Assembly (NCBI RefSeq): GCF_964204865.1
Contig: NC_135253.1
Span: forward strand, 16,306,001-16,370,000
DNA length: 64,000 nucleotides
Direction: 5' to 3'
Origin: Styela clava
Lineage: Eukaryota
Position 1 is the first letter of the stretch; each line of letters opens with the position of its first letter. The notes beneath the pieces were generated by a model, which was given only the letters and a program-made list of their open reading frames with translations, had not been told where the DNA came from and ran no database searches. This document shows, in pieces, positions 8,412-16,509 of the stretch. Both the position numbers and the translations under genes were made by a program.

Positions 8412-10234
8412 GTTACCACCCAACATTAATATCAATAAACATGAATAAAAAATGCTTCAGATATGTTTTAACATATTTTAGGTGTGTCCAAAAACAACAT
8501 TAAATTTCCACGGAAAGAAAGAAAAATTACTAAAATATTCGCGTATACACAATAGGGCGAATAGGCAATAACATATAGGCGTTTAAAGTTAAATAGAATT
8601 TCGGACATGTTGCACACTTGATCAAGTGTGGTATTGGTCAAATTTTACATGAATATGTATTTTTGAGTATAATTATGGATGCATCAATTGCGTGGAATCG
8701 CAGACAATTTTTTTTTAGACTTACATTTTAAAACTTTTCATTCATTTTCCATTCACGTATTTTTTGGATAAAGCAACATACTTTCGCCTTACTATCTGTT
8801 ATTTGCAGCTTATCGTTAGCTAGTTGTTCTTGAAGTGGGGCGCGAGACTTGACAAATTCTAGAATGGGAGCGCGGCTTCAAAAACTCCCGAGAACCACTG
8901 ATGTAGACGAATCCGTCAAGATGAATGTTGCACATTCATCCCCGAAGTGATTCGTGTCCAGCTCGGTAGCGCAGGCCGATATTTTATCAGTTAGTTGCAC
9001 AAACTAACAAATTATCTATCTAATATTTTCGCGCGTCTGATGTATGAGCCGTGCACGTGGTACAAGCAGTTTGAAGCCCGACTGAAATAACTTCAAGACA
9101 AATTAGGGGTTTCTCAGCGCATTGTTGCCTTACAAACTTACATGCCAAATCCATCTGCAACACTCCACAATCTCAAACACAAGTCACATTTTGAACTGTC
9201 AGAAAAAGCTCTACTGCTTATATGATATATAATATATATTTGATGACAATATATAAGCAATGAGAATCTAATCATTATCTGTGCAAAAAAGTATATATTA
9301 ATCACACATATACCAGTTTTAATATTGAAGTACTGGTAATGATTTAGTCAAAATGAACAACGACATTTATATTGATTTCTTCTAAGAATCATCTATATAA
9401 AATTAGGATTACAAGCAGCATGTAGTAGGGAATCACAATGGTATAACACCTTAAATGACATTTTAACATCTATATATCTTCATAGAGTCAGTGCTTAAAA
9501 TCTCCAACAAATTGTCATCAGAATTACACATAAAAGAGAGTTAGTATTAAAACATTGCAATTAGTGCAATGCTGATCTGGCTTTCATTGTAGAAAAGGAA
9601 CAAACTCAAGTCTAACCTTAAAATGTTGAATTACAAAATCAAGACACCGTATATGTAGATAATTAGTCTATACATGCATAGAAACATCATAAATATATCA
9701 TATACATTGTGTATTATGCATTCAACTAAATTATGGCTATGAAACTGCAAGCAGGATAACAAAAAATGAAAATATATCTATAGGAACAGCAGCGGGATTG
9801 GGTTAATTAGATAAATCACAAAAAATCTCATTTATTTTGAAGGCCTATATCACATACTTCAATGCAATACTACTGCAAATGGGAATTAAATGAAATTCGA
9901 TTGAGCAAGAAAGGGTTAGACTTAGAGTTATATACGCATGGTTCATTACCACCAGGAGTGGGGAAGTTTTGTTGGAGCTACCAGAAATTTAATTATTTTT
10001 TCACTTTTAGAATTTACTAATACTCCATACCTACACAAAAAAAACATTATTGGCTATGGAGCTTAGCCCCAAGCTGGGTTCGGAACTGAAGTCACTGCTC
10101 ACTTTGCAGATTGTCATACCACAAAACATATTTGAAATGAACAAATAAAAATTCATTCTAAAAACTTGAATCTTTAGCACACATTACATAAAAAGCAGAT
10201 ATTTAATTCATAGCGGCATTTAACAGCATCTACT

Positions 10235-10261
10235 TCACAGCTTAGGTTGATGCCCTAGTCA
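10235..10261 (-). other. Stop-codon readthrough motif TGA-CTAG and C-terminal extension X-LGHQPKL-stop (cryptic PTS1)
   Basis: Minus strand: TCA GCA TTG TGA CTA GGG CAT CAA CCT AAG CTG TGA. Confidence 0.8.
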
Positions 10262-13200
10262 CAATGCTGATACTTTTTTATCCAAATTTTCAGCAAGCTT
10301 GTCCATAAATTCAAAGGTGTTCAAGTAGTCGGATCTTGTAACGCTATATAAAAGAAATTTCAATAAATTATTCCGTAAAAGTAGCTCCAGTGGTTGAGTG
10401 GTAAATAGGCAATGTAGGCATAAAATAAAAATCATATTGAGAGTGAGCACAAAACAGTTTGATACAGAATAACACCATTTAATCAAATTTACCAATTAGC
10501 GATTCAAATTTACTTAAGTAACATGTTTGGCCGAAAAAGAAGAAAAATAATAAATATGATCGAAGCCCCCAAAAACTTATTCATTTATATGAGATGTCAA
10601 CTAAAGACTTATCAAGGTTTTCAAATTTGAACCATCAAAATGCCATGTTATAATTCAGCCTTCATCTTTAAACTCACATGAAAATGAATTTTGTAAATAA
10701 AATTTTGCAGTGTTTAAGCCTACTCTGATAGATAGACTGTTAGAAAAGTTTAAAAATTTTGTCTGAAATGCTGACTCTATGTTCCGTGGAAAAACAAGAT
10801 GCCAGCTTCAACCATTGGGAAAATAAGACTGGGTTTAGACGCCTTCTTCAGTGAATACATGTCTATCTCCATGATCCTTCTCCGACAGAAGAATCAAAAT
10901 CATATCCTACCTCCCACCTACCCAGTCAGGTTCACGCTGTGTGATTCACAATTATTTCCAAAACCTTCAATTTCGTAATTAACTCACTTTGAAATTCCTT
11001 TGATGCAACCAGCTAAATCCTTGGTCATAAATCCAGCCTCAATAGTCTCTATACATGTTGTTTCCAATGATTTTGCAAATTTTTCCAAAGCTTCATTCTT
11101 ATCTAGTTTTGCTCTATGTGACAGACCACGGGTCCATGCGAATATGGATGCTAAACAAAAGTGTTCAGTATGTTATTCTGAAAATCTATAACTATAATGA
11201 TGAACAACAATTTGCTGTTATTTAGGGCTGGTAATACAGAAATATATTGCTGCCTATCAAAGCAAAAACACATATGAAAAGTTATATAATTCACTCACAG
11301 ACTACTAATTTGTATTTATTCATTATGAAAATAGGTACTCCCGTAGTATGTGTACCGGATTAGGGTTAGGCCATAATTTTATTCTGTTTCCATTATTTTA
11401 GTTCTATTACGAGTTTGGGGACTGCCTGTGTTAACCAAGTGAATATACCCCCGCCCATAGGATTCAGTCCCTTCACACAACTTGATGTTAAGTAAGCGAA
11501 CAAAATTTGCTACCTCCATATTGGTACACACACTTCCGAAGTGCCTGAAAATAACTTTCTTAAGATTGCATTTGCAAAAGCTGATGCCACACACTAGAAT
11601 ATAGGTTTCTCCAATACAGTAGGAGCTTTTACCTATTGGGTTTGTTGAAGTTTCTTTTCCTTGTTGGTGTTGTCTGTAATGCCTTGTCACAGTGCCATGA
11701 GCTGCCTCCGCTTCGACAGTTTTACCATCAGGGCAAATTAATACAGAAGTCATCATTCCAAGAGAACCATACCCTATGAAAATAATACAATTTAGACTTC
11801 AAAACCATAATATAGCATTGAATTTGAAGACACATTATCAAATCACAGTAAGACTAGAAAACTGACGAGGCATCTTGATCAGGAAATCGTGAACCCACTG
11901 AGAGGGTTAGAGACCTGCTCCCAGAGGGTATGAGAACTCGGAATTTGGGTGAGTCTGGTTAAGCAATCATAAATAAGAAAAAGCATTCACTATGCTTCAA
12001 TTTTAACAAAGACACTGCATATATTTATGTACTACTGTAATTTACTTTTGCATCATTTGCAAATACTCATCCGATTTTTAGTGTTGTTTTATTTTAGTGT
12101 CAGATACACAAAAAAATTGAAAATACTGTAATAAATTTGCTATCAAGTATACAAAGAATATTATTTTTTGCGATTTTAGAAAAAGATGAAAAAGAGAAAG
12201 TCAGGATTCACTTGAATAGACCAGGCAACAGAAGTGTAATAATTTAATTAAAAAAAACATACTGGTATTCCTTTAATAAAGAGTTATTCTTTTTCAAGGC
12301 ATCTTTAATAGGTGGTAAATTGTCTGTAATGAGATCGCTTTCTCGATAAAAAATAAATAAAACAAGATCCAACAACAACAACTTACCTTGTGCCACAGAA
12401 TCTGATTGTACATCACCATCATAATTTTTACAAGCCCAAACAAATCCTCCTTCAGACTTCATGGCTTGTGCAACCATGTCATCAATCAGACGATGTTCGT
12501 ACCAGACATTCAAAGCTTCAAATTTGGATTTGTAATCTCTGTAAATATAAAAATCATGAAGTGCTTTTGTTCCATAGAACACAATAAATGAGTCCTTCAG
12601 TGTGTATTCATAGTTTAGTGGAATTATATATAAAATTGACTAATGAATATTCTTTCCCGCGAACTAGACCAAAGTGACCAGCACAGCATTATTAAATCAA
12701 CTTCGATGCGTCCAACATACGATAATAGAAAAATATGAATTGTAAGTCTGACATTAGGATTCTAAAGTATTTTTTGGCATGCATCAAGTGTTTAAGCGAA
12801 CAAATTAGTGAATTAAAGAGCATGAGATAAAAATGTGTTCAATGGTTTAAAATAATTTTCGGGAGAATTTACATTGAAAAATGGATTGGAGTACTGGGAC
12901 GACATAATCAGTCTGAGACAGTAAGAGGCAAATATCTTTAAAGTTACATAAAGCAGCAAATTTAGGAAAACCTGATACTTTCATATTTATATGCTTGAAT
13001 TAAAGAAAATTTTCATACTAGATGAACAGAGGAAATTATAGAAATGATAAACACACCTTTCATATATTTCCTGAAAAATATCTTTGAATCTCCCGTCATA
13101 TTTTTTCAAAATAGTATTCTTGGTACTGAGATATAGAGGCCATTTCTTATCCAGTGCATAGTTGAAGCAGCAGTGAGCAAAATCTCCAATGGATTTATCA

Positions 13201-16200
13201 GTATTGTACATTGCCATAGCAACTCCACCAGTACCTGTGTATAAAGTAAACAAAAAGAATTAATTAACTGAAAATTATGCACCGTTAATTAACTAACACC
13301 ATTAATCATGAAAGATAAAAGACCCTAATTAAGCTCAATAATACACTATTGAACAACATTCTTTTGTGCTATTAGTACATTAATTAAACTTTAAATAATG
13401 ATAATTCAATATAGTTTGTGAAATTAATAGTTAACTATCTGAATATCAAAGAGCCAATTCCCCAAATACCTCTATTCGAGGATATAACAAAAAATAAATT
13501 GAATGAACTGTATTTCACTATCAAGCACGTAAATTCATATATAACGAGTTATATATCACACAATATCATAATGCCATTCAAGTGTTGAAATGATAATGAA
13601 CCTGGAAGGTTAGCAAGTGTCCCAGCAGGGCTGTGGGTTAGGTTGCCAGGGCCACCGACACCCCAGGTATATGGTGAGATGAAGCTTCTTTCATGATTAT
13701 TCCATGATCGGTGCTTTTTACCGGTATGTCTTTTTTCAGACCCTTCAACTGATCACCCACCTCGTTTTAAACATGATGATTACCAACATCGCACGCTTAC
13801 GTCACACCACCCGGACTGGCCCAGTTTGACACAGTATTTTTCTGATGGCAAAGTTATTGAAACTTACTAACAATCATTCTGGTCCAAATTCAACCAAACC
13901 TTGCCATTATCCATAAAATTAACTGTACAAACAACTATCAATTGTCCCATTACCTTCAAATTGGAAGACTTCATATTCTTGAACTTTGTCACCATTCTCC
14001 GGTGTGAATTTGATAGTCAATTTCCCAGGTCCAGGAACAACAAAATCTGTAGCTTTATACTGAAATAATAAAAAAAATTATTTTCCATCACTTCAATTTT
14101 AATAAATTATAAATTGCTCATTCAAATCCTAACAAACCTGGTCACCATATGCATGTCTGCCAATAATAATTGGTTTCTTCCATGTTGTCACTAGACGCGG
14201 AATATTGCTGCAAATAATTGCTTCACGAAAGACAGTTCCACCAAGGATATTTCTGCAGAAAGATGAAAAATTCAAATATATTGATATAACATACAATGTA
14301 TTTGATCCATCCAACAGAAAAATTACACGATCCACTTGTATAATAAACAAGAGAGCGATGGTCAAATACTTGGACACGAAGGCCAAAACGAGGTAGTAGC
14401 CTATGGGTAGCCTATGCAATCTGTCAGAGTAGACAACCAGAACTACAGCCTTCAGCCGATCACCAGATAGCGCGAACGCGGAACCACCAGAAGGTGAACC
14501 ATTTTTGACGACTTCGCACATACAAAACAAATCTCATAAAGCCCACAGAAAGTTTTCAAAGAAATAAAATAATAGCCTTGTAGCGAAAAATACAATGTTT
14601 AACCACTGAAAATTTCGAAGCAATTGGTCCAGTAGGCCTAGTTGAAGAGAAAAGAGATATTTTCACAAGAAGAAGAAAACTAAAAAGAAATACCAACAAG
14701 ATGAAGAACAACATAATAAAAAATCAATCCATAGGTCCACTACGTGTCCAATAATAGATAAAACAGGGTGCAACTATAGCTCGAGGTCTACCGCAAAAAG
14801 TCGCCTACCGAAATGCAGTTTGAGATCAATCACATTAGGGTTAGGGTCAGATCCATGCCATACATCACTAAATTAAATGTAAAGGAAGAAGCGATATCCA
14901 TTAGGGATGAAAAAAAATGCAGTGCAAGACCTTGTGATAGTTGGAGGTAGATCTGACACTATGGTAGAACCTAAAACATTTCTTGTAAAATTCTTGTTAA
15001 CCAGTGTCATTTACTTGTAATACAACACTGCACTGTTACAAATTACATTTGGTATATATATAATTTCACAGAGCATATGAAACTACCAAAATTAGCAATC
15101 AATGATATTGATCTATAATAAATTATGTGTTTTAAAGCAAGTGATGTATATGAAGTGAGTGTTCCAATACCTGATTGTTCCATTTGGTGATCTCCACATT
15201 TTCTTCAACTTGAATTCTTCAACCCTATTCTCATCAGGAGTAATAGTTGCACATTTGATTCCAACATTATATTTCTTGATGGCTTCAGCAGCATCCACTG
15301 TTACTTTGTCATCTGTTTTGTCTCTGTATTCGATTCCCAAATCATAACTGAAGAGCAAAATAATGAATGAATATGTGTTAAAATGTGGGTCTGGTATAGT
15401 AGAGTACCACAGATACGACCAGCGGGCGTGGCTTATTAATTTTTGCTTATGTCATTCCTAACCCCCATCTGACTTACCCCAAAGTGTTTTCTAAAGAGTA
15501 TAAATAGAATAAGGTATAAATAGTATTTTATAATAATAATGTTCCAATCTACAACTGAGAATACTGGATTAAATTTAAAAAAAAAAAGAAACAAAACATG
15601 ATTAAGTAAACTTTTTCTGTGGTGTTAACTAGGCAAGTGCAGTTTTAAGTATTCTGTGGCATCTGCAGCTGCCGCAAAACCATGGCGGTATTTCCATACC
15701 ATGGCCGCTACGGCCAAACTCATGGCAACTGACTTTTTAGCTGCCACAAACCAATGTCGAGCTGCCGTTACCGCGGCAGCAAATTGAAAACCAATGGCAG
15801 GTAAAATTTTGCTGCCGTAACCGCGGCAGGTGGGCCGTAAAGACAGGGCTGTCTATTATTGTGACAAATATTGGGTAAGTTGGAACGTTTTTTTTATGGA
15901 TACAGTTTTGATTGATTTGGGGTTAGGGTTAGGGTTTAAGTAGATATAATTCCACATGATCAAATAAAATCTGGTACATTAATTTGTGAATATACCGTTA
16001 ATACTGATTACTGAATAGCGCTATAAAACCATGGCAAGAGCTGCCGCGGTTCGTTCGTGGCAGGAGCTGCCATGAAGTGGTAAGAACTGCGCCTCTAACT
16101 AGGAGTAAGTTAAAATTTATTGTGTTCATTACAATATAAAGCAGTTGATATATGAAATAGCTACTATAAAAACATTATCTTCATAGAATCAGAAGTATAT

Positions 16201-16509
16201 ATTATTAAAAGATAAGAAAGCCAAAGAATGATAAATGAGCTAGTAAAAAGTGTAAGCACAATTTTGCAAATGAAAAGGAATGGCATTAAAAAAGAATCAT
16301 TGTTATCTGAGGAACATGGAAACATAGAAATTTGTACAATTTAAAAATTGAGTCAAGCGCAACAAACAGAAGAATAAAAGATTGATTTACCATTTAATAT
16401 CAAGATCAACATATTTTAAAATGAGTTTTTCTTTGATTAATTCCCAGATAATTCTAGTCATTTCATCTCCAAGCACTTCCACAACAGTTCCACCTTGAAT
16501 TTTTCCCAT
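10259..16509 (-). CDS. IDH1: Cytosolic NADP-dependent isocitrate dehydrogenase, 9 coding exons, 411 aa
   Basis: Exons 16509-16391, 15347-15171, 14252-14138, 14059-13954, 13234-13057, 12538-12387, 11773-11633, 11150-10988, 10343-10259; all GT-AG, phases consistent, 1236 nt. Motifs [56 protein letters not shown]. No N-terminal presequence. Confidence 0.97.
14369..14754. mobile_element. Dispersed non-autonomous repeat family, Helentron/DINE-1-like or MITE (copy in an IDH1 intron)
   Basis: Ends ttggacacg ... cgtgtccaataa; core aaatttc(g/a)aagcaattggtccagta and an (aac/aag)n tract. Other copies at about 37044-37230 (partial), 39366-39610, 40708-41198, 46620-46950, 47970-48340 and 63724-63941. Confidence 0.75.
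15634..16095. mobile_element. MITE-like element in an IDH1 intron
   Basis: 8-bp direct repeat TAACTAGG at 15626-15633 and 16096-16103; degenerate TIR (gcagttt/aactgc); many subterminal ctgccg/catggc motifs. Confidence 0.5.

Follow-up and report, generated by a model that had tools for sequence, protein, structure and literature searches.

The 64,000-nucleotide (nt) stretch of the Styela clava genome analysed here (NCBI RefSeq assembly GCF_964204865.1, contig NC_135253.1, positions 16,306,001 to 16,370,000; hereafter the window, with positions counted from its first letter) carries on its minus strand the gene for the cytosolic NADP-isocitrate dehydrogenase IDH1, and this report concerns the stop codon of that gene and the short in-frame tail behind it, which ends in a putative peroxisomal targeting signal type 1 (PTS1). 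According to the open reading frame listing and splice-site inspection, the gene consists of nine exons running from 16509 to 10259, with 411 codons and with introns that are all of the GT-AG type. Exon 1 (16391-16509, ATG at 16509) matches exactly residues 1-39 of RefSeq protein XP_039248943.2. Joints in RNA contigs, GT-AG borders and the match to RefSeq define exons 2 (15171-15347), 3 (14138-14252), 5 (13057-13234), 6 (12387-12538), 7 (11633-11773) and 8 (10988-11150), as well as exon 4 (13954-14059), whose RNA joint was moved by 3 to reach the GT-AG borders, and the coding part of exon 9 (10262-10343), delimited by the sequence and the RefSeq match, ends in NLDKKVSAL. The RefSeq entry, a protein of 411 residues named 'isocitrate dehydrogenase [NADP] cytoplasmic-like [Styela clava]', contains the nine exon translations as exact ordered substrings, carries PF00180 and has KKVSAL as its C-terminus. 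Because the product, starting with MGKIQGG, has no mitochondrial presequence and matches this cytoplasmic enzyme exactly, we identify the gene as S. clava IDH1. Database searches were made with single exons, and the RefSeq protein was reached via an environmental complementary DNA (cDNA), L017, and then served itself as the query for relatives. No second genomic copy or haplotig of IDH1 was found, so the locus is single copy.

At the end of exon 9 the minus strand reads GAT AAA AAA GTA TCA GCA TTG TGA CTA GGG CAT CAA CCT AAG CTG TGA, that is, DKKVSAL-stop-LGHQPKL-stop. A first-pass annotation, made from the letters of the window, had claimed that the exon ends in KKVSAL-TGA and is followed in frame by LGHQPKL and a stop, and we confirmed the sequence, its coordinates and its reading. 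The annotated stop TGA, which we propose to be leaky, lies at 10259-10261, which is also where the protein ends in RefSeq and in another S. clava record. It is followed immediately by CTAG (10255-10258), which completes the UGA CUA G read-through consensus (PMC4973966, PMC4207609), and by the seven in-frame codons of the extension LGHQPKL (10238-10258), of which the last three, CCT AAG CTG (10238-10246), encode the proposed PTS1 tripeptide PKL, as judged from the sequence, the ends of vertebrate IDH1 proteins and PMC8919083. A second in-frame TGA at 10235-10237 would terminate the extended isoform. The annotation had also presented UGA-CUA(G) as a context of high read-through and had foreseen that standard gene models would miss the longer product; both points hold, given that the full consensus is present, that UGA CUA G by itself suffices for a read-through of about 4% in mammalian cells (PMC4973966) and that the RefSeq model stops at SAL. 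This normal end is not a PTS1, and the C-terminal twelve residues of the longer isoform include no acidic one.

The extension is part of the mature messenger RNA. RNA contigs from three studies were mapped onto 9900-15500, and the joints of exons 2 to 9 are all present in them; since these contigs carry exon joints, the runs represent RNA and the gene model is transcribed. The start of exon 9 at 10343 is preceded by an AG acceptor and is joined to 10988 in spliced contigs, which extend from exon 8 across the stop and the seven codons behind it into the 3' untranslated region (UTR) and continue for 347-474 nt past position 9900. The 3' UTR thus comprises at least about 800 nt, and its remainder after the second stop was placed at 9426-10234 as a lower limit.

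The strongest competing explanation is that the extension is ordinary 3' UTR, either a chance reading frame or the eroding remains of an ancestral tail that was longer until a nonsense mutation truncated it, in which case no IDH1, or only a trace, would be peroxisomal. Against this explanation stands first the rarity of the arrangement. All TGA, TAA and TAG triplets of the window, on either strand, were taken as mock stops (n = 7,706). CTA follows 0.68% of the TGA mock stops, CTAG follows 3 of 2,800 TGA trinucleotides, and 0.34% of the mock stops are continued in frame by a stretch with [SACP][KRH][LM] at its end. TGA-CTA and a PTS1-like end coincide at a single one of the 7,706, namely the IDH1 stop. 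Chance alone is unlikely to account for the hidden tail, because the joint expectation for the two features is about 1e-5 per gene. Moreover, IDH1 is a gene with orthologues already known to bear a PTS1.

Polymorphism in the RNA contigs bears on the same alternative. Two variants are listed within the extension, 10253 C>T (plus strand; GGG>GGA), seen in all runs, and 10238 C>T (plus strand; CTG>CTA), seen in one study; both are synonymous and both leave TGA-CTAG and PKL unchanged, a pattern that does not favour ordinary UTR and is weak evidence consistent with constraint on the extension peptide. Past the second stop, the variants listed in 335 nt of UTR comprise at least 11 single-nucleotide polymorphisms, one 2-nt deletion and one 11-nt indel. 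The latter is an insertion polymorphism at 10195, 40 nt past the second stop, which occurs in two versions differing in the last base; it was seen in RNA contigs of two studies, and the reference and one study lack it. One run with a different-organism label (X10) was considered as an independent species and rejected: it contributes a single low-depth contig (10130-10275), whose haplotype is that of run X5, the remaining IDH contigs of the run are 80-85% alike, and the run probably reflects sample carry-over or a mixed sample.

Next, we compared the C-terminal ends of IDH1 in relatives, which were retrieved as proteins with XP_039248943.2, the tunicate comparison covering the protein ends. Two Logan transcripts (P0319 and P0325) of 90% identity have 411 residues, end in KKVSAM and stop at the same position as S. 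clava, and one Logan transcript at 84% identity ends in NASQL. The IDH1 ends of the other ascidians are NKSQL in Clavelina lepadiformis, KSGHSQL in Ciona intestinalis, whose tail has GH in common with the hidden S. clava tail, and QNQSQL in Phallusia mammillata; three hemichordates end in KMSKL and amphioxus in LAPQ. A maximum-likelihood tree recovered the tunicates as one clade (support 94/96) with two branches, the first uniting S. clava and its 90% relative with the 84% relative, which ends in SQL, and the second formed by Clavelina, Ciona and Phallusia, all with SQL. Since SQL, which has been rated a weak PTS1 (PMC8919083), is found on both sides of the ascidian split, it is probably the ancestral ascidian end, lost in the Styela pair, and the hidden signal of S. 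clava would replace it. The stop itself is neither recent nor an assembly slip, because it is common to species that differ at 10% of their residues. This too speaks against ordinary UTR, since a neutral leftover of that age should decay and would not be expected to keep the QPKL found behind the S. clava stop.

That tetrapeptide is the one that many vertebrates carry openly. Most frogs, reptiles and fishes have an IDH1 that ends in KLSAQPKL or a near variant, mammals end in AQAKL, and among the matches listed PKL is the most frequent end of vertebrate IDH1 (22 proteins). The statement of the first-pass annotation that vertebrate IDH1 ends in AKL is thus right for mammals and does not extend to most other vertebrates, whose end is QPKL; the correction therefore strengthens the case, as these are the same four residues as in the hidden tail. 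Its view of PKL as a PTS1 variant is in line with the literature, in which zebrafish Idh1 'contains a PTS1 (PKL)' (PMC8919083) and chicken IDH1, ending in PKL, was scored +1.3 and classified as 'targeted' (Stiebler et al. 2014, PMC4207609, Fig. S3).

Additionally, metagenome and metatranscriptome contigs were scanned with a C-terminal IDH1 fragment, which returned 80 loci, mostly full-length cDNAs; after removal of duplicates, 10 loci had a direct PTS1 and 62 did not. Among these 62, a hidden PTS1-like end occurs in 17 of the 18 genes with a TGA-CT context and in 2 of the 44 with other contexts (Fisher p = 4e-12), which speaks against ordinary UTR. The 17 hidden ends lie 4-18 residues past the stop and are SKL, SRL, AKL, ARL, CRL, SHL, ANL, SSL or SRI; the eighteenth gene has SLL. 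The loci listed for this pattern are L008, L011, L014, L016, L017, L019, L022, L028, L032, L034, L037, L049, L057, L059, L064, L075, L080 and L083. L049 combines TGA-CTA and a hidden SKL with a direct AKL end and was excluded from the 18. The cDNA L017 mentioned above, 92% identical to the annelid Dimorphilus, has TGA CTAG followed by LELSKL; the taxon labels of the other environmental loci are rough only. Judging from these predicted ends, the hidden-PTS1 device in IDH1 is far wider than the four species in print. Three further loci (L006, L061 and L068) were considered as information on Styela and set aside: their TGA is not followed by CT and hides no PTS1, they match the exons of S. clava IDH1 no more closely than other loci do (about 75% for L006), and their best named matches are non-tunicate.

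The environmental set also illustrates a second route to the peroxisome. In L039 (1725-1826) and L030 (1435-1542), whose transcripts are annelid-like or mollusc-like, the last exon is duplicated 170-450 nt downstream, the first copy ending in MAA or KMA and the second in SKL, so an alternative terminal exon seems to do there what read-through would do elsewhere. An analogous explanation for S. clava, in which RNA processing supplies a PTS1 through an alternative terminal exon or splice site, draws on these two loci and on the annotated isoforms in Ciona, Ptychodera and Saccoglossus. We consider it very improbable at this locus, where a loose tblastn search revealed no second exon-9-like segment in the window, including the 10 kb downstream of the gene, and where the contigs of the three studies show just the 10343/10988 joint and no splice joint within the last exon. 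Moreover, splicing to the AG of CTAG, or removal of a GT..AG segment around the stop, would shift the frame and miss PKL.

We also looked at other genes of the S. clava genome that could inform on the need for such a signal. The genome has two NADP-isocitrate dehydrogenase loci, IDH1 being the sole one besides a mitochondrial-type IDH2 (L002:874-2211), which is intronless, has a 40-residue presequence, ends in LKK, which is not a PTS1, and is 100% identical to XP_039251899.1; neither enzyme has a PTS1 at its normal end. Matches to the PEX14 N-domain and to PEX3 exceed the Pfam cut-offs, and since both are present, S. clava has peroxisomes. A genome search with the LDH/MDH C-terminal domain further located MDH1 (L087:1453-2508, minus strand), an intronless gene that matches human cytoplasmic MDH1 with E = 1.7e-146. 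Its end, KHLGSS-TGA-CTT GCT GCA GAG TCC CGA TTG-TAA, reads stop-LAAESRL-stop and so hides SRL after UGA CU. That two redox-shuttle enzymes of one genome carry the same arrangement, as predicted from their 3' ends, argues that the arrangement is used, and it is a further point against reading the IDH1 extension as plain UTR. As a side observation, IDH2 and MDH1 are single-exon genes, in contrast to the nine exons of IDH1, so several central metabolic genes of this genome may be retrogene-like.

These data fit the following mechanism. Most ribosomes would stop at the UGA and yield the 411-residue IDH1 ending in SAL, which would be cytosolic. Of the short contexts known to promote read-through, UGA CUA G is the strongest, and a few per cent of the ribosomes would therefore be expected to continue, inserting Trp, Arg or Cys at the UGA and reading seven codons up to the second UGA, to give an isoform of 419 residues that ends in QPKL. 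PEX5 would bring this PKL-ended isoform into peroxisomes. IDH1 forms dimers, so an extended subunit may also bring an ordinary partner along (piggy-back import). The analysis demonstrates the sequence, the gene model, the transcription across the stop, the statistics and the comparative pattern; we infer in this scheme the rate of read-through, the inserted residue, the import into peroxisomes, the piggy-back import and the physiological role. The interpretation put forward in the first-pass annotation, dual localisation through read-through, is supported at every point that was tested in silico, and we give a probability of roughly 0.8 to the proposal that S. clava IDH1 makes a read-through peroxisomal isoform.

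Several observations weigh against this proposal. No stimulating RNA structure was found after the stop (z = +1.0), so the rate of read-through would depend on the short context alone, and the rate of about 4% would have to be carried over to a tunicate from mammalian cells, where it was obtained, rather than taken from a tunicate measurement. As a PTS1, PKL is weaker than SKL or AKL, and the chicken score of just +1.3 is in keeping with this. That both listed variants are synonymous has a probability of roughly 0.07-0.18 by chance, and each contig contains one mismatch left unexplained; in addition, the 24-nt extension, with its 2 variable sites, is not less variable than the UTR beyond it. 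Finally, the disappearance of the ascidian SQL end in the Styela lineage could be plain loss. The last two points favour ordinary 3' UTR; set against the evidence of context, conservation of the stop, environmental genes and MDH1 given above, they leave that explanation unlikely, although it is better placed than the RNA-processing one. The least probable explanation, that the TGA is recoded otherwise, as selenocysteine via a selenocysteine insertion sequence (SECIS) or by RNA editing, has no other pointer than that UGA is the selenocysteine codon, and it is opposed by the lack of any match to Rfam families, SECIS included, in 9000-10400 at E up to 1, by the fact that IDH1 is to our knowledge not a known selenoprotein and by the absence of listed variants at 10259-10261 in the RNA contigs of the three studies, in which rare variants would be hidden.

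The read-through proposal for S. clava IDH1 has clear precedents. Stiebler et al. 2014 (PLoS Genet, PMC4207609) defined the UGA CU(A) element and reported, in Fig. S3 and Table S2, NADP-isocitrate dehydrogenases with TGACTA and a hidden PTS1 in Drosophila (SHL), Apis (SKY), Tribolium (ARL) and Aplysia (SKL), in accordance with the insect precedent that the first-pass annotation had mentioned; the same figure marked all its deuterostomes, Xenopus, Gallus and Homo, as 'no readthrough', and a 2016 review restated the Drosophila case. The insect and Aplysia genes share with S. clava the enzyme, the TGA CTA context, a short extension to a PTS1 and the proposed purpose, and both cases are predicted. 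They differ in belonging to protostomes; the S. clava extension has 7 sense codons (8 added residues with the one read at the stop) and ends in PKL. The mammalian MDH1x and LDHBx isoforms (Schueren et al. 2014; PMC4207609; PMC5133446) are likewise made through UGA CUA (G) alone, with a few per cent of read-through and a short PTS1 extension, from a redox-shuttle dehydrogenase with dual location in cytosol and peroxisome; however, they are different enzymes that serve an NADH shuttle and have been shown experimentally, while S. clava IDH1 would serve an NADPH shuttle and is known from its sequence. The S. clava MDH1, with TGA-CTT and SRL, in turn resembles vertebrate MDH1x, with TGA CTA and CRL or SRL.

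Comparison with orthologues places the S. clava arrangement more precisely. Vertebrate IDH1 has the same QPKL tetrapeptide, but constitutively and in the main frame, and in S. clava it stands behind the stop and five codons further than in the frog-type tail (VSA-L-stop-LGH-QPKL versus LSA-QPKL). In Ciona, Phallusia and Clavelina, orthologues from the same subphylum, the SQL end is constitutive and weak and would give partial import, whereas S. clava and its 90% relative have a normal end, SAL or SAM, that is not a PTS1. A functional parallel exists in yeast, where Yanagida et al. 2015 (PMC4526572) described a cryptic PTS1 past the stop of the pre-duplication IDP2 that is reached by +1 frameshifting: this is also a cytosolic NADP-isocitrate dehydrogenase that becomes partly peroxisomal through translational bypass of a stop, but it is fungal, lacks the UGA CUA context and relies on a frameshift, in contrast to the in-frame read-through proposed here. 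Full-text searches found no literature joining read-through with Ciona, ascidians, tunicates or Styela, and Hofhuis et al. 2016 (PMC5133446), on MDH1x, does not mention tunicates. S. clava IDH1 is apparently the first case found in a tunicate or in any chordate, for a mechanism and an enzyme already proposed for protostomes in 2014. New here are the match between the hidden tail and the open tail of vertebrates, the contrast with the ascidian SQL, the parallel in MDH1 and the breadth of the device in environmental IDH1. The gain is incremental, as both the principle and the enzyme were described in 2014.

Peroxisomes depend on an NADPH supply of their own, which IDH1 provides by way of the isocitrate/2-oxoglutarate shuttle. 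Lineages differ in how the share of IDH1 that enters peroxisomes is set, and the S. clava gene would bring the read-through solution into the chordates, namely into the group that is sister to vertebrates, and would offer a concrete example of a targeting signal crossing a stop codon in evolution. A tentative scenario, which we regard as possible but less likely than not, is that a leaky stop with a hidden PTS1 was the ancestral state of animal IDH1 and was kept, within chordates, in S. clava; the vertebrate end SA-QPKL would then have arisen when five codons, the stop among them, were lost from an SA-L-stop-LGH-QPKL tail like that of Styela, and the other ascidians would have settled independently on the weak SQL. 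If this is true, lineages would set the peroxisomal share by three interchangeable means, through a leaky stop, through a constitutive but weak signal or through an alternative terminal exon. Since MDH1 and IDH1 of one animal would share the device, embryos of S. clava or Ciona would be practical for testing read-through outside mammals.

Two further features were noted in the introns of the gene. The intron between exons 7 and 8 harbours a 203-bp dispersed repeat (11334-11536) with 3,828 first-look candidates in the genome, scored copies being 86-91% alike; its RNA-contig depth is about 10,000-fold over that of the exons, neither tRNAs nor Rfam families match it, and it is probably a family similar to miniature inverted-repeat transposable elements or to short interspersed nuclear elements. 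The stretch 14575-14761, within the intron that separates exon 2 from exon 3, reaches an RNA-contig depth in the thousands and presumably represents another repeat family, because many variant contigs map there.

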